DNA of 64,000 nucleotides from Cycas panzhihuaensis (taxonomy: Eukaryota; Plantae; Cycadophyta). This document shows, piece by piece, positions 69 through 54,285 of this stretch. The translations under genes were made by a program, and so were the position numbers. Numbering within the stretch: the first letter of the stretch is position 1; each line of letters opens with the position of its first letter. The DNA lies in contig CM041465.1 in the NCBI GenBank assembly GCA_023213395.1, positions 124,875,741 through 124,939,740 of the forward strand, in the 5' to 3' direction. The notes beneath the pieces were generated by a model. It made no database searches, was not told the origin of the DNA, and saw nothing but the letters and a program-made list of their open reading frames with translations.

Positions 69-80
69 GCTCTAATACCA
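69..80 (-). promoter_or_regulatory. Primer-binding site (tRNA-iMet type) of an LTR element running off the left edge
   Basis: The reverse complement is TGGTATTAGAGC (1 mismatch to TGGTATCAGAGC), 2 nt after a CA LTR end at position 83. Confidence 0.7.
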
Positions 81-13739: not shown

Positions 13740-15440
13740 TGGTATCAAAGCGGTTGGATTAAGCTTGTTGTAGTTATGTCAACGTTTCAGCCCATGCTCT
13801 CTCTCTTCCTAATCCCAAAATCTCTGTCATCCCTTCTATCTATTAGTGTCAAATTCTTTGCATCCAAACCCTCGCTAGAGAGTTTAACCAAACCCTTCAG
13901 GACAATGAGGGTTTCTGCAGGCTTGGTCTCCACTGAAGGTTTTGAACCCCCAAGGCTCTTAGCGTTCTTCTGTAATTCAAGGAGCTTCTCTTTCATGTAT
14001 TCCCCCACCTGGGGATGTATAATGGATGCAATCGAAGGAGGCAAAGAAGGTCTATATTTGATGGCTGTAATCTTGTGCACAGAATCGTGAGCGAAACCTA
14101 GCTATGTTTTCTTTCCTGTTTTCTGTGGACCTAATTTGGTACCATCCTCTTCAGAATTGAAACTCAGCAGCTAAGGAGATTCAAACCATGAGAGTCGACA
14201 AACGAAGATGAGATAAATTGGAAAATCTATGTATGAGGAGCTTCTGCAATGGTTTGTTGGCTCCCATATTGGCTCTACCCTCACTGTTGCTCACCCGAAA
14301 AAGAGCATCCCTTAAGAACTGAAGACATAAATAAACAACAGAATCACCTATGCCATTATCGCCCCTAAGGAGTTATTAAATCACCATTCGAAGCCATCGA
14401 ATCACCGCTGAATCTCCATTGCTTAAAGCTACTCAATCTTCTCGATGTTTGAAGCCTTTTCATATTCAAATACGGTCCTTACCCGTTGAAGCTCCTCATG
14501 CAGGATTCAAAGATTAATTAAACACCATCCAACGCCATAGCTGCCACCTCAAAGAACATAACTAGGTAGGGTTTCGTAACCCAAAACGGACCCAACATTA
14601 AAATAAATTTGATATATATATATATTTTTGGTTTAATTAAAATTTCTTTTAGTTTAGTTAAAACTTAATTCGGGTCTGCCACCCCTCCTTTCCCCCTACC
14701 TTTTTTTTATTATTTTATTTTAAACTTTATAAGTAATCAAATCAAACTTAGTTAATTTTTAGGATAACTTAATTAATTAATTTAATCTTAGTAATCAATA
14801 AAAGTAAACATTTCTAAGTGCTTCCCTCCCATTTTTTATTTGAATTAATTTAAATACCCCCTCTTCTCTTAATTACTTAATTTTTATAATTTAATGTTAA
14901 TACATTATAATTCTCTAATCAATTATTTATAACACTTGATTAATTCTATTTAAATTTTCTTTATCAAAAGATAATTAAAGGGAAATCATCACTATAAAAA
15001 TTAGACTAAATAGCCCCTTTCATCACTCTAAAATAAAATCATTAGTTAGATAATTCATTAATAATGTTGTTTTGATAATTAGCACATTAAGTACCAAAAT
15101 CTTTAATCCTTCTCATTCATAACCTATAATTTGTTATAAATTAAAATTTTTCTTTTAACAACAAGGGGAGTATCTATCATTAATTTTCTTTTTTTCTAAG
15201 GGGATGATATTTACATAAAGTATCTAAATTAATAGCAATGATCCTAAGAACTTTTATTCATGTCTCTGCCTTAAACATTTGATTTAATGTCTCTGTTACT
15301 CATCAATGGCAAATTAATATATGCCTCTAATATTTAATGTTTTTTTAATAAATCAATTTTTATGACATATTCACTTCAATCACCTATATTTTTCTATCAA
15401 CTACTCAATTAGTCTCTATACATTGTCTTTAATTCCTAAT

Positions 15441-23196: not shown

Positions 23197-26100
23197 TATT
23201 AAAATAATATTTTATCTAGAATAGTACCTTATGTGGTATAGTTAATTATTGAGGGTTATGCGACATTCCCTCTTTATTATAAGAATGACAAATGACTTAT
23301 ATGTAATTAGTAACTAAACTTCTCTTATTCCTATAAAGATATTATCTCTCAGATAATCAATGAACGCATCTCATTCTTCGAGTGTTTTCTTCATGGTATC
23401 AAAGTAGGAGTTATGATTAGGATTACTAAGACTAAAAAAATTTTGGTGAGTTATTATTTTCTATCGTCTCGAAGAAGATTATGAAAACAGGAAAAGTTAC
23501 TAAAGAAAGAGTGTTTTATTTACTATATGATCATGTATCGACTATGTACAGAACTGCGCAAAGTTGCCCATACTTGAAGAAATTAAAGTTCTTAACTTTT
23601 TCTAAAATTTGATTAGCAAGACCATTTTGAAGAGTACATCATTTTCTTCCAAAGACCTAACTTGAAATCCCTTCATTTAGATGGTGTTTTTCTTGAAATA
23701 CATCTATATATAAGTTTGAAAGTATTTGAGCATATTTTTTTGAAATCATATATTTAATCTAAGTAAAAACTCTCTAATTTCCTTCCTTAGTCTATGATAA
23801 TCATTTTTCATATAAATTTAAAGAGTTTGAGTGGAGATTTTAAAAGTTTCAAGAATTTTTTACTAAAAATCCTAGTCACACATTTTTATTTTTGGGCCTG
23901 ATTTAAAGCAAATTAGAGAAAATCTTTAAAAAAGTCTTACATATTCAGAATCCTCATCTTAAAATCTTTCTTTTAATCTTAGTTTTAATTTATTTTATAT
24001 AATTATACTTTTGTACAAAATTTCATAGACTCATATGGCCAATCAGACTCAAAACCTATAGTACATTCTGATAACTTTATTTTCCTTCTCTTCTGAAGAT
24101 GGACTCCTTTGTTCTAGCTCTAGGTGAATGGGACAAACCTACTCTATTGAATTACCATGTCTGGAAGACCAAAGTTAATAATATTTTAAGAGTAAAAATT
24201 ACATGAGAAACAGTTACATAGAAAGAGAAGAGACCTACTAATGCTACTAACCAACCCAACTAAGACGATAAGAATAATTCTAGTTTCATAACATTAAAGC
24301 TATCCATTTTGTATTCCTAATTATTGCATGTTGGAGGGGTGAATTCTACTAAATAAATATGGAAAGCATATGCTAACCTATATAGTCAAAAGAATGAAGC
24401 TAGGATAGTAGCTTTGAAAGATGAACTATACAAAATTCATATGAGAGAAAAAGAATGTTTCTAAATTTGTTCATAAAATAACATCTATCATAAATGATTT
24501 TACTAGTGTTGGAGTAAATCTTCTTGAATCGAAACTTATCCTAATAATTATTAACAAGCTTCTAACATCATTTAATAATATGGTAAACACCATAATTAAT
24601 AATAATCAAACTATAACAATGTCTCTTAAAACTGTCACAGGTCTTCTACTAACATAGGAACAAAGAAATAGAAGATATAAGGAAGAATCTAAAATAGAGG
24701 AAGCATTCTTATCCAAACTTAGCTTTGGAACTATAGGATGAAGACAATCTTCCTTTAGAGGTTGTAATAGATTACTTGACACTAGAGATTAATCTAGAGA
24801 AAGATGGAAAGATAAGAGAGGCATAGGAAGATTAGTCTTACCAAGAGACTCTAAGGTTTATTTTAATTACAAAAAAATAGGCTATTTTTCTAGTAATTAT
24901 TAAGCACTTGATGTGTACTATTACTATAGATAAGGAGGACCTTATCCTTATTAATTTTCTTAAAGGTGAGCTAAAATTCAAAGAGGAAAATGGCTTACAA
25001 GAAATTACAATAAAGAATAAACCAATCTTGATGATGAAGAAGAAAAAGAAATAGCCTTTATAGCTATACTCACTACTTATACTAGAGATGAAGATGTCTA
25101 GTACATTGACTCAGGGGCATCCAACCATATAACTAGATGAAAAGAATGGCTTAAATCCTTGAGCCATATTCTCCTAATAAATTAGTTGAATTAGGGAATA
25201 ATATCCCCTTCACATTCAAGGTATTAGAGTAATAGTAGTGGAAATGAAAGGAAAAGTAATAAAGATTGGCAATGTTCTTTCCATACTAGGATTGAAGAAA
25301 AATTTGTTGCCTATATCTCAACTTGGTAAGAAGAAGCTAAAAACCATCTTTGATGAAAATGGATTCTATCATGTCTTGCATATGAATAGAGGAGGAATAG
25401 TAGTAGCAAATGGCATAGAACGCAATGATATTCATAAACTACTTTCTAATCACATACCTATTACCTTAAATGTTGATGTAAAGTCTTTTGTTATTTCAAA
25501 TATTGATAATAACAAACTCTAGCATTTGAAGTATGGGTGTATCTCAACTAATAGATTAGAAGTATTAAAGAATTCTAATATAGTTGATGAACTACTAGAT
25601 ATTTTATTTCATTCTTTTATTTATAAAAGTTATTTACTAGGTAAACAACATAAATTTTAATTTCAAAAAGGTATGTGCAAGTATAAAGCAATTATAATTA
25701 GTGCATTTAGATTTTTGTGGGCATATTTCTCTAAACTTACTCAATGAAGCAAGATATTTTCTCACATTTATTAATGATTTCTCTAGAAGAGTCTGGGTAT
25801 ACTTTCTCTACGATAAATTAGAAACATTCAATAAATTCAGAGAATTTAAAGCTTAAATAGAGTTAAAAAAGTAAGAGCAAAGCATTTGATTTGATAGTGG
25901 AGGAAAATATACATCAAAAAAATTTTAAGATTACTATAGAACCCATGTAATACATATATAAATAATCACTCCCGATACACCTTAATCAAATAGTGTTGTA
26001 GAATTGATAAACATAACTATCATAGAAATGGCTTGAAGATTAATTCAAGATAAGCAACTTCTTAAGGCATATTAGGTAAAAGTTGTAAACACAATAGTAT

Positions 26101-36002: not shown

Positions 36003-37809
36003 AATGATGTTGGAATATCAAATTATTAGTAATGTACATTATAGGTCATATATGATTGGTCAACATAAAGGCAAGATATGATTAGTTAATACAAAAGCCA
36101 AATGTGATTGGTTGTAAGTGAGGCACATATGATAACAATATGACTATAAGTATACCTACATGGTGAGATGTATATATGTATGAGATTTTGAGATTAGATT
36201 TGAGATATAATTATAATTTTGATATGTTGAGCTCCATTATAGTGTTAATATTATTTTGTTGATCCTAGTTATGTTATCTTGTGTGTAATTTAAATTTCTA
36301 ATATGGTATCAAAGCTTATGGTGAAGAAGAGAAGTTGAACATGAGAACTTGATGAAGATGAGAAGTTAAAACAAGGTGTTGTAATGAAATTTTGCTGAAT
36401 TGAAGATTGTCAGATATTGTTGTTACATCAAGTCTATTTCATAAGTTATAAAACTATCACTTTTTATCAATATTATACTTATTGATTATCTATTACTACT
36501 TTAAACATATTATTGAAGGGTCCATAGCCTGTTTAAAAGAAAAAATCTATCAAAGAATATATTTTATGACTAAATCCTAATTTTGTTTGTAAAAGTGGTA
36601 AATTTATTCAAGTTTATTTAAATTTGTTCTATGTATATATCCAAAATGAATGCAAAGATCATTTTAGTTATTCAAGCCTATTTCAGTTGGTTTAGCATTA
36701 TTCTTGATTCGTTCATCAATTTTATTCCAAAAATTTCCTACCTCTATTGAGCTATTGTTATATTCCATAACCTTATATGTATGGTTATCTTGATTAAGTA
36801 CATGAATTGCATAAGCCTTGGGTGTCTTCATGCATCTATTTTTTGATCAATTTGTTAGCTGCAACCCTAAAAATTATTAAGCTCATCATTAAGAGAGTTG
36901 ATATCTACGAAACCATCAAAGAGTTCTTTAACTAAATTGGACTATCTAATGACCCTATGTTGGATTTGTACCAAATCACCAGTAGCATGCTCATTACATA
37001 TTCTAAGAACATGAGAATTATCTTGTAGATTATTTGGCTCATTACAACATTCTAATAAAACTTATGTAAAGATCATCATCTGAAGAAGTAGAGTCCTACT
37101 CTAAAGCAACAACAAAGGGTCCTAATCGAATATCTTATTCATTGTCAATATTATATACCCTTTAACCCCATCTTTATTCCAAGCCACTCAGTGTAAGGAC
37201 TGCCTAGTGAAGGTCCAAAAATAAAGGTTCTAAAAGGGTGTTTTTCCCAATCTTGATGAAGTTCAGTGTTTAATAATTAGAGGTATTTCTATAAAACTGA
37301 TACAAATTTAAAGATAAAATAAAAAATAATAGACCCAATTAAGCATCCTACTAGGCCAAGTGGCCAATTTAGAGGTGTAGAGAATCCAATATATAAAAGT
37401 GCATATGTCACAGTAACAACATCATTGTCCTCATCCGTATATGTTATAATGAGCTATAGATTAAACTCATTGTGCCTTTAAAAATAAACTTGGGATACTT
37501 AGGACTGCAATTAGAAACAAGGATCATCTATTTAAAGTCATCGCCTTGAGTTTAAATAGAGAACAAGCTACCAAAAAAATGGCAAAATAAGTTGCATCTT
37601 CCTTAGAAGAATTTAAAGGAACCCTTTGATCTTTAATAGTATTTAACAATTTTTTTTGGATTTGGATCTCTTTGATGAATTTGGATAAAAATCAAACCTT
37701 AAACTATCATGTGTACCATCTTCAAATGACAAACAATGCTTGTGGAAGGAAGTGATGGTAGATTTGGTTGATTTTATTAGTAAAATAAATTCTTCATTCC
37801 TTATTTGTT

Positions 37810-44048: not shown

Positions 44049-46989
44049 TTTTTCTAACCCTCTAATGTTTAGTCTTTGCATTTCATTTAAAGATATACTT
44101 ACACACATGAAATGACGGTTGGGTTAGTTTGTCATTAAATAAATGCCCAATTGACAACTTACCTCCTAACCAAAAAAAGAAAAAGAAAAAATCATTGATA
44201 AAATAACATGTTAAGGGTTTAATAGATAAAAGAGAGGATTTAGGAATTAGAAACTATATGAAATATAACATAAAAGGTAGTAAATACCATAGGAAGGGCT
44301 ACTAGCCCATTATAATAAATATTACAAGGGTATAAAAACCTAAAAGAAGTACATGCATCAATAGTATTATTAACAATATGTCAAATGATTATCTAAGATT
44401 ACATAGTTGATTACTTATTTATATAAGAAGAGGATAGGGTTTAAATGGAATGAGATATACAAAGAAAGATTTTCATAAAAATAAAGAATTTACTCACTTT
44501 GCACCAATTCTCACCCTACCAAACCCACATATAAGTTATATAATATGTATAGATGCAAGTAGGAAAGGGATAGGTGACATACTTATGAAAAATGGAAGGG
44601 TAACCTCTTATGAATCATGAAAGCTAAAGGTTTATGAACAAAATTATTTTGTACATGATTTAGAACTCACTTCAGTAATACATGTCTTGGAGATATAAAG
44701 ACACTATTTATCAAGAAGAAATTTGAGCTAAGAATAGATCACAACAATTTGAAATATCATTTTATATAGCCTCAACTAAATGGAAGACAAAAGAGGTAGA
44801 TGAAATCATTAAGTTAATATGGCTTTAACATAAGATAAATCAAAGGAAAAGAGAATGAATTTGCATATAAGCTCTACCAAAGAAGATACATTGATTGTAC
44901 AAGATTCATTTAACTATGCTTTAAAATAATGTATAATATTTCAACTTATGTTAATGGAATTTGATGAGATTCTAGCATGACTCATGTTGATATCAATGGA
45001 TTAAATCCTAAATTGACCTATGTCGATGATGATCAACCAAACCTAGAGGTGATCCATATCACCTCCCTTAGCATAACTCGACTAGACCTAAAGACACTCA
45101 TTAAGGATTGATTAATGAATGAATAGCGCCATTAACAAGTAAGAAATTTTCTTAAAGAGTAACAAGGCAATAAATAGGTAAATAGTAAATTGGTGTACAA
45201 TTATGAAGGATATTAGATATCAAAGGATAGACTATTGTTCTATCAACAACATCTTTATGTGCTAAAAGAGGAGTCAATAAGGAAAACATTTATAGTAGAA
45301 GCCCATGATACCCTTGTTGGATAATGTTAGATGTAATGTTTTAATACGTTGATGTATTCCCTTGTTAATATGTATTAAAGGGTCATAGTGTATACACTTT
45401 TTCATGTATTTGGCCATTGGTTAAACAAGTGGCTCTTGGTTTATGATTGAATAAGCATAAGTTAGCATGTATATAGAAATATATATTATGTTTCCTAATA
45501 TAATTAGAGGTGATAATTTCCTATAATTATATTGAACTGTGTATTGTACATATTTACTAAATTTTTACACATATATGGCTTTATAATTTTTATATAATTA
45601 ATGTTGTATGTTTATAATATCAAATTATGATTATATAATTTTTAATATTATATTAGAGTTATTATCTAATATAAGGGTACATACAAGACTATAAGTGTAT
45701 CCATATATCTGTGTTATTCAAAACTTCTTTATATATACCTATTTGGGGCCAATGAGGGGGATTATCTTGCTAGGTAAAGTTTGTTGCAAATTGGTGGGAA
45801 GGCTATCAAGTTGCATTTTTGTAGAGTACTTGGAGCATGTTGATGCATGTTCCTAAAGAGTATGCCAACTGCCTAAGGAGCCTAGAGCATGTTGATACAT
45901 GTATCTGAATAGCATGTTGCTACTTAAGTTATTAAAATCCAATTAGAGTATAAGTGTTATAATTATTTGAATCCCATTAAGGTTTGATTCATGGTTTTAT
46001 TCATTTATTAAGTTATTTTTTATTATATGTTCAATAGCATGTACATATAGGTGTTCATTGTCAATGAATGAAACTTTGGAAGCTAGACTAATCACCTTGT
46101 TAAATCCATTTTTATGGTAGAGAGAACCACTATTTCACCTTCTATTTTATGATAAAAAGTCTAGGTTCAAAGAGGATTTTATAGTAAATATAAACATGCA
46201 TGGAGTACATATTTAGTACAATAATTATATGATGTGAAAGTATTTAAAAAGTATTATTCATTAGAAATGGTATAAGTTAGTGTTATATGATTGAAAGTAT
46301 AGACTAGTGCATATCAAAATGATCATTTTAAAAATTTTCACAATCTCTAAAGTAATTTTACTTCTTTATAGATATCATGAATCACTTTTAGACCAAAAAT
46401 ACATCGTCTGGTTGCCCAAAAATTTAGTTTAAGTTTTTTTTTTTTTTTTCTAGTTTTATAAAAAATTGTAAGTATTCACTTTTCTTAGTTATGAGAATAG
46501 TTTTACTTTATTAGAGTTTATATGGAGCATGTTGTATGTCTAACTGCGCATAGGTCAATTTTTATATGATTTGAAGTACTTTCAAAATTTTATTAAAAAT
46601 AGACTGTTTTAGATTTGGTGGCATTTTTGCTCTAAGTTTACTTAGTAGTTAGGATTTTATATATATATAAAGGCCATGAATTATTATTATTATATATTAT
46701 AAAAATACTTAATTTTTAGTTTTTAGAGTTTTAGAATAAAAAAACTAAAAATTTATAAAAGAAGTATTATTATAGGGAGTTTGGTTATATTTCTTTGATA
46801 TATATTATTCTACTCACATGTTTGTGTTACTAAAAAGATTTGGACTCCATCATTTAGTATTAAAGAATGGTTTAGTTTTGGTAGGAGAGGAAAAGAGGTT
46901 TATAAAAAATTATTGGTAAGTTTGACATTTCTTTTAAAATCTATTTAAGTATATTAGAAGTAGGTTGAAAGTGTTTATAGAAAAAGAAT

Positions 46990-48610
46990 AAATAGCTTGA
47001 GAGGGAAGATTGCTAGAGGAGGGAATGCACAACTAAATAAGAGGATGCAAAAACTTCAAAGAAGGATTGAAAAACTTGTAGAGGTGGTGTTGAGATAACA
47101 AAAGATCCTTCTAAAGAATGAACAAGGTAGAAGGAGATATGATGGTGATATAGAAATAAAAATAGAAGCTATAGTAGAACATGAAGAAGAATGACCACAA
47201 GAACCCCCATCCTATGAGGAGAGAATATTAGAAGCTATAAAAGACAAGAATAGTAGAATAAAGCTTGATGTCTTAGAGTATAGTGGTAGTTTGAAGCTTG
47301 AAAACCTAATTGATTAGTTGAATAACATGGAGAAATTTTTTGAATGAAAGGACATGACAGAAGAGAAGAAGGTGAAACTTGCATATACTAAGATAAAAGG
47401 TCATGCAATGATATTGTAGGATCACTTGTAGAAAGAGAGGGTTAGAAATAAAAAAGATAAAAGTCAAACTTAGAGTAAGATAATAAAGAATCTTAAAGAG
47501 AAATTCCTCCTAGTGGGCTACTCACAAACTTTATTTAAAAAAAAAAGAATTTAAGGCAAAGTATGATGAGTATATAAACTTATACTGATAAATTTTATAA
47601 ATTATCAATTAGGGTGGAGCATGAAGAAATAGAAGAGTAGATAACTATTACATATATAAATTACTTAAAATTTGCTATACATGATGAATTTAGCATGCTT
47701 AGAATTAATAATATGGAAGATATTTACTAATTTACTTTAAAAGCTAAGGAGAAATGGGGTAAAAACCTTGCTCAAAAATTATATATAATGAAGAAGGAAC
47801 CATTAACCCTATTTAAAGGCTAGAGTGGATTCAACTACTCCTGTGAGGAATACTCCAATCAGATGGAGTAGTAGATTTTAACTCAAGGAAAATAAGATCA
47901 TAGAGGTTTTTAGAACCAACTAAGAGGTTAATATTTCTAATAACCCAAGAGAGGAAAAAACTTTGATAGAGTGGGTAATACACCTAGGAGGCCTATTGTT
48001 TAAGGCCCGTGAATATCCTTATTATTTTGACTAATCAAGAAACCAAAGGAAACAACCGAGAGTATACTTGGTTCAAGCTAAGAAATAAGAACAACCTACA
48101 AAAGTTATAGTAAACATTGGGAAGAACCTGATGATAAAGAAAAACTTTAATTATTGTAAAACAAAGCCAGGTGCAAGACAAATAGAAATCAAAGAATAAT
48201 AATGAATCATAGTTATGTAATAATATCTTTTAAATAAGATGCACTTCAAAAAGTGAGATTTTTAAAGTTATTATTAATAATGGAAGTTGTGAAAATATGG
48301 TATCCATTAAAATAAAAAAAACTAGGATTACAACATGAAAAGTATCCTACACCTTATAAATTTCTTAGGTAAAGAAAGGGAGTGAGGTGGTAGTTAAAAA
48401 GAGATGTTTAATAAAATTTACTATTGGGCAAACATACTATAATAAAGTATGGTGTGATGTCCCCCCAATATATTCATGCCATGTACTAATAGGGAGGTCA
48501 TAACAGTATAATAAGAATGCATGTCATAATAGGAAAAAGACTACTTACATCTTCTAAAAGGATGGTGTAAAGGTTATATTACTACTTGTAAAGAAGAAGT
48601 ATAAGCAAAG
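46990..48610 (+). pseudogene. gag: G gag and protease remnant
   Basis: Motifs include EYSGSLKLENLID*L..MEKFF, EKKVKLA, KVIINNGSCENMVS and VWCDVPPI..CHVLIGRS. Confidence 0.88.
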
Positions 48611-48960
48611 TAAAATATAACCCTACTTTTCCTAAGCACTAGTAAGCGGAGGTCACCAACAGGTTAAGGGTTAATGTAGTTATTAAGATTTGTGGATGGA
48701 CTACTACGTTGTCCAATAAGATATAAGGCCGCTGGGGCCACCAATAAAATCATAACTAAGAAGACCTTCACATGTATATTTAAAAGGTTGAATATAACTT
48801 GTAATGGTTATTAAATATTATTATCTTTGAAGAGAAAGTACTTCAGTACTCCCTTAAATGATCAATTTATTTGTTATTTGCTTGCGAACTTGTGATATTT
48901 TACCTTTTACTTCTATTGGTCTACATCTACAAGGTTGATTTTTTTAGAGGAAACATTCCA
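48611..48960 (+). repeat. H left LTR (plus orientation) followed by agTGGT
   Basis: TA(=TG)...TTCCA termini; inverted copy of 51770-52119. Confidence 0.93.
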
Positions 48961-48966
48961 AGTGGT

Positions 48967-50306
48967 TGAATCCCTAAGATAACATTAGACCCAGGCATAG
49001 AAATCTGATACCAAATGGTAGGAGCTAATTTAGACTTAAAGGATTTTAATAATACCTACACAATGGAACTTTTGGTACCCTAGTAAAGAATATGTGAAGT
49101 CAGTTTTTGGTATGATATAAAGGTTAAGTTGTTAAGCTATAAAGATATTAAGGAAGCTAAGTGACATGCCACCATCAATCAAGATAGACATTAGAGTCTT
49201 GCGAAGGATGTCTCTAACTTGTAGGGGTTTGGGATAGGAGGAGATGATGATAGTGGATAGGGATATTTCAGGTGGGGTTTTAAGGTAGGGTCATCATGGG
49301 TTTTATCATTAGAATCATGTTCAATGTTAGAGTCAAAGGAATTATTTGGGGATAAAGATGGTTCAATGGAAAAAACCCTGCATTGCACCTTGCAAAAATA
49401 ACCATGCTAAGAATTCTACTTTTCTATACATTGCTTACAAAGGCCAACCCTTAGTCGGCATTATGCTTTAGCTTGGGAAATTTGGATTCTTTTTGTGGAT
49501 GAGTCATCTTTCTATCGGTCGCTAGCTAGGCGAGTGGAATCATCCTATTATGATTAAGGACGTATAAAGTCAGCTTGAGGATGAGTAGCATCATTAAATC
49601 AGGGTTGTGATTACTAGAAGTCTGAATGTTGAGTGTGTGAGAATCAAGGGTTATCCCGATAAGCAGTTGAGGGTCTATCTACGATAAATCCAGCCTCTAT
49701 TGCTCGAGCCCACTTGAATACTTCCTTGATGGAGTAGATTACCTTTGTCTTTAATCTAATTTGAATACGATCTTGGAGTCTCACCATATAAATATCAATC
49801 ATTATTTGTTAATCCAAGTTTTGGCTTTGTAGTGAGTAATTGTATAAAGCTTGAAATTTGTTAGCATAAGCCTCCACTACTATAGTTTGTTTAAGTTGAG
49901 TAAGTTATGTAAAGAAAAATTGACTCCATGTATCCTCGTATTGTTCAAAGAAACAATTGGTAAAGTGAGACCATGTTAAGTGAGAGGGATATTCTTGCTT
50001 CAACTAGTTGAACTAATGGTGGGCTCATCCATCTAAGTAGTTAGAGGCATATAACCATTGGTCCTTCTTTGACATTGGGTGGGGTGTGAAGTAGGATTCT
50101 AACTTGTTAATCCAATTTTGAGTACATTGTCTATTCACATCCATATCAAAGGTGGGAATATTGCCTTAGTGGAGAACCTCTTGTAGGTGCATGGCTTCCT
50201 TGAAAAGGGAAAGATTGGTTACTTGTCATATTAAAAGTTCCTGTGCTTTAGAGTTAAGGTTATAACAATTATTGGAGTTGAGTAAGAATCTCTTGTTTGG
50301 TGCCAT
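48967..50306 (-). pseudogene. gag: H gag plus aspartic protease, truncated at VILGIQ
   Basis: ATG at 50306. Motifs include IPTFD...NWINKLESYF, LTWSHF, LTQLKQT..VEAY..F, ILIDGG.SLSFL, LVSDFY and VILGIQ. Confidence 0.85.
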
Positions 50307-51769
50307 CAAGATCAGATTTGGTACGTATACCATCGAATCTACTACTAACCTCTTATTTGAAGTTAGATAAGTCATTGGTTAAATCAAAAATTTTCTCTCC
50401 TTGAGATTTTACCATTAGTATTGTAGAAGGATATTAGATAAGCGAAAATAAGTAGAAAAAGGGAAATGGACAAAGTAGGACAGATAAAAAAAGAATAAGA
50501 TATAAGAATAAGGGAGTTGTTATAGGGGACAAAAAGGGTAAATAGGGAAAGTGTGGGGTGTCTATAGTCTATTGACCCAGAAATTTACGTAAACAAGATA
50601 TTTGGCCCATTAAAAAGAGCACAAAAAGCCTATCTAAATGGATTATATGAAATTTCAAGTGAGTCTGAGGTGGTAGAGCCTACCGGTGATCCAGATATTA
50701 AAAAGCGTAAAAATTATTTGCATGAACTAACCTAATGCAAAATGACTAACATAATATACTAATCAAAATAAGGTATATGAGTTATAAGGATAATTTTTAA
50801 CTATGAACTTACACTATGAAGAGTGATGAAGTGGAGGTTTTTTCTTTTTCTTCTTTCTTTCTTCTTCTTTTTCTTTTTTTCTTTTTCTTCTTTTTTTTTA
50901 TGAGTCTGATTATATTGATAGTTTTTGAATTTAGGAAGTAAATAAAAATTAGTCTTTTTTTTTTTTAATATGTAGTAGATTACAATCTTAATTAAGAAAT
51001 ATAACACGTAAAGCAAGGTGTAAATGATCAAAGGTATCCTACGAATTACTAGATAATGTGTGCTTGATCTTATAAGCCTACCAATAAACTTTTGATATAG
51101 AAATTTAGGGCAAGTAGCTTTGTGGCACTAACTGCTAACCACCGCACTACAAGACTTTAGTAGCCAATAGTTTACCTATTCTAAGAAGGATTTGGGGCCT
51201 AAAAAGGTCCTCTTATATACTTAAAGATATGTGGAGTTAACGCTTTCGTAGCCAGGTTCTATCTAGGGCTTAGTTTAGAAGTGTTACCTCTAGCCCTTCA
51301 CGTAAAGGGCAAATAAGCCATAATGTGTTTATCCAAAATAACATATCCTTATTTTTTTAAAGACCCCTGATATAGGGTCTCTACCTAACTACTTGGGTAG
51401 CTACCAATCGGTGTTATCTACCTAGGAAAGAGAGGTAGGAGGAAGAAAAGGTAGATACTCAGTGGTGTTATCTACCGTTGGACTAATAATCTAATGCAAA
51501 AATTGAAATAAAGGAATGAAACCAAAAGAAGAATATAAATCAGAAAAAAAAATAGAGTAATGGCATTACCTAGGGGAAGAAATTCCCCTTCCCTTGCAAC
51601 TCCTAAGTGGTTTTAGTACTGTTCCTTAATCTCCATAAAGAGAGTACTAAGTAAAGGTCTTTCCTTGATTTCTACTTGGGTAAAGAGGGTACTCAATCTA
51701 ATAGAGAAAAAAAATAAATCAACCTATTAAGCAACTTGCCATAATTGCGATGGTGGCTTTGATACTACT

Positions 51770-52119
51770 TAGAGTGTTTCCTCTTAGAAAATCTACCTTG
51801 TAGATGCAGACTAATAGAAGTAAAAGCTAAAATAACACAAGTTCACAAATAGATCATAAATAAATTGATCACTAAAAGGAGTAGTGAAGTACTTTTTCTT
51901 CAAAAATAATACTACTCAATAACTATTACAAGTGATATTTGATCCTTTAAATACACATGTGAGGGTCTTCTTCCTTGTGATTCTATTGGTGTCCCTAGTA
52001 GCCTTACATCTTATTAGATAACTTAGTGGTCCATATATAAATCTTATTAACTACATTAATCCTTAACCTATTGGTGGCTCTCGCTTGTTAGTGTTTAGGA
52101 AAAATAGGATTATATTATA
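51770..52119 (-). repeat. H right LTR (true 5' LTR, minus orientation)
   Basis: Followed on the minus strand by ag and TAGTATCAAAGC (iMet PBS). Confidence 0.93.
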
Positions 52120-52337
52120 CAAAGACTATGTTAACCACTAAGGAATTCTTAAAGAAAGTAAGAGAGGTAGAGACTTGTTATGCCTTGGTGATAAATCAAG
52201 TTAAAAACATTGAGGAGATAGAATTAATACCACAGGAAGTGAACTGTTAGGTAATATAACAATAATGGTTGGAGGCTAATATTTTGATATGTTGGCAGTG
52301 CAGCTTCCCCCCCAAACCTTCTTTGGGGGGTTCCAAG

Positions 52338-54285
52338 TAAAAGGTGATAGAGCCACATATTTTAGCACTATCAAATTTCAAAAAGGTATTTGAAATTAGC
52401 TGTGATGCTTTTGATATAATTATTGGGGTCATGTTGAGTTAAGAAAGAAGACCAATAACCTTTTATAGTAAAAAGTTAAATGAGGTGAGAAAGGAATATT
52501 CTACCTATGATATAAAATCTTATATAATTATGTAGGCTCTAAGGTATTGGTGGAACTATCTTCTACCTAAGGAGTTTATTTTGTTTATAGACCATAAGGC
52601 ATTAAGGTATATAAACATAAAAACAAAAAGCCAAATGCTAGACATATGAAATGGGTATCATATTTATAAGGATTTACTTTTATCCTAAAGTATAAAATAA
52701 GAAAATAAAATCAAGTTGTTGATTCCTTAAGTAGAAGGTAGCATTAATAACCACTATAGTAAGTGAAGTGGTTGGGTTTCATGCATTAAAATATATATAT
52801 ATATGGTACTAGTCTTAATTTTATCAAAGTTATGGAATGTTGTAGGAACCCTTTAGATAATAGGAGTGGACTTAAGTATGATGCTTATTTTATATAGGAT
52901 GGGTATTTCTTTAAAGGTAAGACACTATGCATTCTAGTTGGGTCCATAAGGGACAACATCATAAGAGAAATGCATGGTGGAGGACTTGGAAGGTACTTTG
53001 GCCAAAATAAAACCATAGCCATGGTAGAGAAAAAAATATTTTTGACCAAAGATGAAATAAGACATTACTAAATATATGGCCAGGTATAGGATCTGTTAGG
53101 TAGCTAAAAAGCATATACAAAACCACTAGACTATACATGCCATTACTAGTTTTAAAGGGGCCATAGATAGACTCGAGTATAGGTTTCAAGTTAGAATTAC
53201 ATAACACCCAATAAGGTAATGATTCTATCTTTGTTGTTGTTGACAAGTTTTCAAAAATGGATCAACTTATTGCTTATAGTAAGACTGACAATGCAACTAG
53301 AATAATAAAATTACTTTTTAAGGAAGTCGTTAGGTTGTATGGGATATTGAAGTCCATCACTTCATATAGAGATACTAAATTTTTTAGTCACTTTTTAAAA
53401 ACCTTATGGAAAAAGTTGGGAATAAAGTTATAATTTAATAATACATACCACCCATAAACTTATGGGCAAATAAAAGTAGTGAATAGGAGTTTAGAAAACT
53501 TGTTAAGGTGTATTATTAGAGATAATCCTAAGTAGTAAGATTTGATACTAACACAGGTTAAATTTACCTATAATAATTTTGTGAATAGACCTATTTGTAA
53601 GCCACTATTCTAGATTATATATAGTAGGAATACAAAGGGAGTATTGGATTTAGCCCAATTGCCCATTAAAGATAATATCAACGATGATGTAGAAGCCTTT
53701 GTTAAACACATGCAATAGGTGTATGAAGAGGTGAAGAGAAAGTTGCAAGATGGTAATGATAAATATAAGGCCACAATAGATCTTAGTAAGAGAAATAAGA
53801 TATTTATAAAGAAAGATTTGGGGATGGTGAACTCGAGGAAGGACAAATTTCCGCAAGGAACATACAACAAATTAAAATATAAAAAATAGGTCCTTACATG
53901 ATTATGAGAAAAATTAATAATAATGCTTATGAGGTGAATCTACCCCATGAACTTAACATTTTACTTATTTTTAATATTTCTAGTATCTATTCTTTTCATA
54001 AAAGAGAATATGAGGTAGAATATGAAATAAAGGGGGTGAAATGGAGACAACAAATACCTAAAAAGAAGAGGGAAGAAATTAAGTAAGTATTAGACAAGAA
54101 AGTAATCTATACAAGACAAGGTAGATATGATAGATATCTAGTTTGATAGAATGGATTACAATAGGAGAATAATACTTGGATATCTAAAAGTGAACTAAAG
54201 AAACTCAACATGGATAAGTGGAAAGAGTTCCAGCATAACAACTCGTAGGAGTCGAGTTCTTTTCAAGTAGGGGAGGATGATACCA
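52338..54285 (+). pseudogene. pol: G RNase H, integrase and chromodomain-like C-terminus remnant
   Basis: Motifs include [43 protein letters not shown]-like [22 protein letters not shown] and RYLV..NG...NTWI. Confidence 0.9.

Follow-up and report, generated by a model that had tools for sequence, protein, structure and literature searches.

The 64,000-nt stretch of Cycas panzhihuaensis contig CM041465.1 (forward strand) that was analysed, here called the window and the source of all coordinates, carries a retroelement insertion of 3509 bp at 48611-52119. This is bounded by two long terminal repeats (LTRs) in inverted orientation and flanked by a direct 5-bp target-site duplication (TSD), CAAAG (Table 1). 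A repeat search of 47500-53500 identified one long inverted repeat, its arms (48610-48966 and 51764-52120) being 357 nt in length, 83% complementary and spaced 2797 nt apart, and BLASTN within the window aligned arm to arm without gaps at 82.6% identity (E-value 2e-103). The outermost G/C pair of these arms (48610/52120) is a chance one-base extension of the inverted repeat and belongs to the pentamers. An earlier examination of the letters without database searches (the sequence-only reading) had described two colinear LTRs of 350 bp in opposite orientation, with the same LTR start, the U3 (unique 3′) end, at both outer termini; the repeat search and the arm alignment agree with it on both points. 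The LTRs are thus inverted, not direct as in a standard Ty3/gypsy element. When arms, interior and flanks were each searched against the window with BLASTN, neither a third copy of the arms nor a second copy of the interior or the flanks was found. Between the arms there are 46 transitions and 19 transversions, which corresponds to a Kimura two-parameter distance of 0.215. With the commonly used plant substitution rate of 1.3e-8 per site per year, this would place the insertion roughly 8 million years ago, a figure that is valid only if the arms were identical when inserted.

Table 1. Features of the inverted-LTR insertion and of its host sequence (positions in the window)
Feature	Position	Strand	Description
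Host, pol of an older Ty3/gypsy element	52125-54083, also ~47900-48605 left of the insertion	+	RNase H-like frame, then integrase
TSD, left copy	48606-48610	+	CAAAG; sequence read
Left LTR	48611-48960	+	350 bp; U3 start adjoins TSD, U5 (unique 5′) end (CA) faces inward
AG + TGGT	48961-48966	+	Follows left LTR; junction at 48966/48967
Protease-like remnant	48967-49300	-	Motif reading only; ends at the junction inside ...VILGIQ
gag	49665-50415	-	One frameshift near 50161, nine in-frame stops; tblastn with P0001
Untranslated leader	50416-51755	-	1.3 kb, non-coding; no domain matches
Primer-binding site (PBS)	51756-51767	-	TAGTATCAAAGC; tRNA-iMet (initiator methionine tRNA) type, 2 mismatches, 2 nt past right LTR end
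Right LTR	51770-52119	-	350 bp; 5′ LTR of the gag-bearing element; U3 start adjoins TSD
TSD, right copy	52120-52124	+	CAAAG; sequence read

The flanking pentamers match at five of five positions, for which the chance is about 0.002 at the local base composition; an alternative reading of the boundary is a duplicated AAA of 3 bp around an element with G...C ends. The region 47900-52800 was compared at 80% likeness with the Logan contigs of four public DNA runs representing three organisms. About 20,000 contigs matched per run, among which paralogues and the orthologous locus are not separable at this likeness, and the joints given here are the best-supported ones. The host flanks and the element are both high-copy in all four runs. 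In each of the four there are contigs that join 48584-48593 straight to 52119-52121, skipping approximately 3530 bases. The letters intervening at these joints align to 48585-48605, mostly with transition differences, and continue into the sequence that starts at 52120, examples being a joint of 22 letters ending ...GAAGAAGTGTGGG and one of 17 letters ending ...GGCCAAG, with a single pentamer and not two. A third type of joint, in which 33 letters link 48593 to 52140, is likewise uninterrupted and has one pentamer-like TAAAT. Since these host paralogues are uninterrupted and have one pentamer, the host repeat is continuous over the site and the block of 3509 bp is one insertion with a genuine 5-bp TSD. 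The perfect CAAAG duplication and the continuation of host sequence across the site had both been put forward in the sequence-only reading, which had named as contrary evidence any relatives showing that CAAAG is not a duplicated target and that host sequence is missing between the ends; the empty-site paralogues of the four runs come out in favour of the TSD. Contig joints on opposite strands (e.g., 48906 with 51826) were set aside, these being LTR paralogues split between equivalent arm positions and uninformative on structure.

In the host, domain matches to SH3_Tf2-1 (E-value 4e-9), Integrase_H2C2 (1e-3) and rve (0.07) were identified. Its ribonuclease H (RNase H)-like frame is found right of the site, and a frame-2 reading runs across the site once the insertion is excised. 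A further RNase H-like piece (RT_RNaseH_2, E-value 4.5e-6) is present at 44438-44617 (+), 4 kb left of the insertion. Because the host has its own RNase H-like frame right of the site, this piece belongs to another gypsy element and the region is a multi-layer nest. The letters before the left U3 start (48590-48610, AAAGAAGAAG..AAGCAAAG) are purine-rich and resemble a polypurine tract (PPT). Such a reading was rejected, as the run belongs to the host pol and is also found in the empty paralogues.

The interior is arranged on the minus strand. There the right arm ends in ...TA, followed by AG and then by the PBS at 51767-51756. About 3.4 PBS matches of this quality are expected per window by chance, and the expectation for one at the right offset and on the right strand is approximately 1e-4. 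The gag region was recognized through a 54-aa stop-free piece (49647-49808, minus strand), for which a phmmer search of 1.84 billion representatives returned one relative, P0001 (E-value 2e-12, 69% identity). P0001 is a gag protein of 259 aa (Ty3_capsid 2e-15, Retrotrans_gag 3e-12) that is encoded on a 3.1-kb Logan contig. When it was used as a tblastn query, 71% identity was obtained over 166 aa (50162-49665, minus strand) and 51% over a further 85 aa, with a joint E-value of 1e-79, while a protein search with P0001 returned only P0002, a gag fragment of 166 aa. No P0001-related loci were found in metagenome and viral contig collections. The PBS, placed 2 nt beyond the right arm, and the Ty3-type gag of the interior identify the arms as LTRs of a Ty3/gypsy-type element.

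Downstream of gag, the stop-free pieces hold protease-like motifs in the right order, with ...ILIDGG... near 49170 and ...GSNVILGIQ at 49000-48967. This piece had no significant Pfam match, no significant match to the Protein Data Bank with phmmer and no homologous protein candidate; nor was there a usable Pfam match for the gag, protease and leader pieces when taken separately. No signal of reverse transcriptase (RT), RNase H, integrase, tyrosine recombinase or transposase was detected in any stop-free piece of the interior. Both U3 starts adjoin host DNA, and a PPT before a 3′ LTR was not found. The content which the sequence-only reading had given for the interior, that is PBS, leader and gag with no RT, integrase, transposase or tyrosine recombinase, holds up with the PBS match, the tblastn alignment and the null domain searches.

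The leader contains a tandem, purine-rich low-complexity run at 50838-50899 (plus-strand positions). To the left of 51354-51356, between 100 and 260 family contigs per run diverge into a different shared sequence in all four runs. The same contigs match to the right of this point, i.e., over the part of the leader next to the PBS. The leader of the 48611-52119 element therefore differs by an indel or a nested fragment from that of most family members.

A PBS-like 12-mer, TGGTATCAGATT, is also present at 49002-49013 (minus strand), approximately 36 nt from the inner junction and inside the protease-like frame. It is most likely a chance match, with a mispriming site as a possibility. That this stretch is tRNA-derived was considered, the 40 nt beyond it having a tRNA-iMet-like look, and rejected, as Rfam and ARAGORN find no tRNA there; the reading is also weakened by the chance expectation for such 12-mers given above and by the stretch reading as protease frame (...WYQISMPGSNVILGIQ). 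Rfam at its gathering threshold gave no match in the whole of 47000-54000.

At the inner junction, the left LTR ends with ...TTCCA at 48960 and is followed by AG + TGGT, after which comes the minus-strand protease remnant. Past the right LTR the letters are AG + TAGT, the latter being the first four bases of its PBS. The letters past the two LTR ends therefore match at five of six positions (about 0.008, or approximately 1%, by chance as estimated from composition), although only at three of four if AG is counted as an unprocessed LTR end. The left arm thus looks like a copy of the 5′ LTR that stops four bases into the PBS.

Taken together, these features are probably the decayed remains of a single insertion, by integrase, of an abnormal Ty3/gypsy complementary DNA (cDNA) with U3 at both of its ends. 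As the direct 5-bp TSD surrounds a unit with two U3 termini, one integrase reaction on DNA that already had inverted LTRs is the simplest account. The DNA inserted would have had the order LTR, AG-TGGT, inverted stretch (protease remnant, gag, leader, PBS) and inverted LTR. Integrase needs no more than a short terminal sequence, alike at the U3 and U5 ends of an LTR and the same at the two U3 ends here, and it may have joined both of these to a staggered 5-bp cut in the older gypsy pol, thereby duplicating CAAAG. Within the virus-like particle, the starting strand may have been an LTR copy ending in the first PBS bases, with the shape of a plus-strand strong-stop product (U3-R-U5, R being the terminal repeat, plus the start of the PBS). 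This strand could have annealed, wrongly oriented, to the sense strand of the protease region and primed synthesis there. Extension back to the 5′ LTR and completion of the second strand would then have generated a linear inverted-LTR molecule, both ends of which were set by plus-strand start sites. In a close variant, the first of two options given in the sequence-only reading, two cDNA fragments would have been co-integrated and their inner ends joined afterwards; alternatively, an unprocessed U5 end may have been joined. That the break falls among the first PBS bases weakly favours the strong-stop route over two full cDNAs trimmed at random. As the insert lacks direct R repeats, a PPT, RT and integrase, it is unable to copy itself. 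It has decayed since insertion, with arms 17% diverged and a gag full of stops, and is a single dead copy with no evident present function. It is a rare curiosity and not a new kind of element.

A number of observations weigh against this origin. Both arms start with TA and not with the canonical TG of the TG/CA termini on which integrases depend, which would need either parallel decay of that base in the two arms or an atypical end. The six letters AG + TGGT, with their one mismatch, could be microhomology with the protease region or chance, and lend weak support to a strong-stop origin. No contig joint at 48966/48967 was seen among the best-supported joints, and the protein and locus searches yielded no sibling copy with flanking DNA. 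The remnant downstream of gag would be a gypsy protease by its motifs only, and the interior may itself be rearranged, given the break in the leader at 51354.

Such a break, and the frequency with which old nested plant retrotransposons are rearranged, would also suit a different history in which an ordinary element with direct LTRs, or a nested pair of elements, later underwent inversion and deletion, the CAAAG match being inherited or coincidental. This history is unlikely, as breakpoints would be needed exactly at the LTR/TSD boundary and again at the inner edge of an LTR, and the left arm bears the letters that follow a 5′ LTR (AG + TGGT) instead of a 3′ LTR context. Moreover, mismatched or inverted TSDs would be left if two elements had recombined, whereas the TSD observed is direct. 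The U5 half-site of the cDNA might instead have autointegrated into its own protease region, resulting in a three-LTR inverted molecule that was inserted by two U3 ends and subsequently lost one unit by LTR-LTR recombination. Recombination of the solo-LTR type is common in plants and retroelements are known to autointegrate as a side reaction (PMC2644782); yet an integrase junction should join the processed CA directly to its target, while here CA is followed by AG + TGGT in agreement with the PBS context, and as several extra steps are required this route is quite improbable.

High copy numbers of the LTR, leader and gag in all four runs are what would be seen if the insertion belonged to an undescribed non-autonomous inverted-LTR family, the second option of the sequence-only reading, mobilized in trans by a gypsy integrase, but such numbers are expected anyway from normal siblings. 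Canonical reverse transcription is unable to rebuild the ends of an element that has neither direct terminal R redundancy nor a PPT next to U3, and it is for this reason that such a family is rated as very unlikely; moreover, the protease is interrupted at the junction within a conserved motif, apparently by accident, and the window has no second copy. There is a similarly slim chance that the locus represents gypsy derivatives integrated by two identical LTR ends, either as a mobile lineage that is non-autonomous or as a class recurring throughout the genome, in which inward promoters and 350-bp arms would give hairpin or convergent RNA that silences the parent family. Inverted duplications can also be created by chimeric long reads, and long terminal inverted repeats (TIRs, here 357 bp) with a short TSD, together with the possible 3-bp AAA boundary, resemble a class II DNA transposon that has captured retrotransposon pieces. 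An assembly artefact or a transposon of this kind is nevertheless extremely unlikely. The arms differ at 17% of sites, which excludes a recent technical palindrome, and behind one arm there are a PBS and gag in the order and on the strand expected of an LTR, with no transposase signal. LTR integrases typically duplicate 5 bp, which hAT, Mutator, CACTA and PIF elements typically do not.

Among known systems, the closest likeness is to Ty3/gypsy (Metaviridae) elements of plants, including non-autonomous, gag-only derivatives. The insertion resembles these in its 350-bp LTRs, in a tRNA-iMet-type PBS at a distance of 2 nt from an LTR, in a gag of the Ty3_capsid/Retrotrans_gag kind with a protease-like region behind it, and in its TSD, whose 5 bp fall in the 4-6 bp range of the group. 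It differs from these in the inversion of its LTRs with both outer ends being U3, and in the lack of PPT, RT, RNase H and integrase. DIRS elements are likewise retroelements bounded by inverted terminal repeats; they possess a tyrosine recombinase and an internal complementary region and make no TSD. In contrast, the present insertion has a TSD and a Ty3-type gag, and a recombinase was not found. The null domain searches and the TSD are also in keeping with the view of the sequence-only reading that the enzymes typical of DIRS and Penelope elements are absent. The features expected of class II elements with long TIRs were not found either.

Complex LTR insertions flanked by a TSD and formed by template switching or by recombination before integration are known with direct LTRs (Sabot and Schulman, 2007, PMC1950507; Zeng and Sun, 2018, 10.1101/452573). 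The locus is similar to these in that an abnormal cDNA would have formed ahead of its integration and been inserted as one unit by integrase, with a single 5-bp TSD. However, the cases described (PMC1950507; 10.1101/452573) have three direct LTRs and two internal regions, and inverted arrangements are unmentioned in either of these papers or in the LTRtype paper (PMC5379124). Recombinant Ty1 integrase performs concerted integration in vitro with same-end donors, with a preference for U3 (PMC8487063), so that a target receives two identical ends (U3 + U3) in a single concerted step, as proposed here. That assay was carried out in the test tube with short, separate donors (PMC8487063), whereas the locus is a chromosomal fossil that would imply the same event in vivo by a plant gypsy integrase. 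A full-text literature search for inverted LTRs with TSDs matched only papers on DIRS, on yeast rearrangement and on vectors. The locus is therefore filed as an LTR-retrotransposon insertion from aberrant cDNA, in an inverted, TSD-flanked form for which no description was found in the searchable literature.

If the proposed origin is true, the locus provides natural in vivo evidence of a plant gypsy integrase carrying out a concerted, TSD-forming insertion with two U3 ends. To our knowledge, same-end concerted integration is known only from test-tube assays. It would also preserve the product of an unusual reverse-transcription error, namely an inverted join at the U5/PBS boundary.

Both LTRs point inward, and their promoters, if retained, would converge; by this geometry they might give rise to double-stranded RNA and small interfering RNA, as proposed in the sequence-only reading. 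If the arms were co-transcribed, their pairing is predicted to form a duplex of -410 kcal/mol, compared with -90 kcal/mol for shuffled sequences.

Elsewhere in the window there are further matches to a tRNA-iMet-type PBS, at 13740-13751 (+), 36304-36315 (+), 23394-23405 (+) and 69-80 (-), with one or two mismatches and several sharing the same G-to-A change. These probably mark other LTR retrotransposons. The GC content of the window is approximately 40% in its first 10 kb and 27-33% elsewhere, while the observed/expected ratio of CpG is 0.18 overall, a base composition consistent with long-methylated and heavily decayed repeat DNA.

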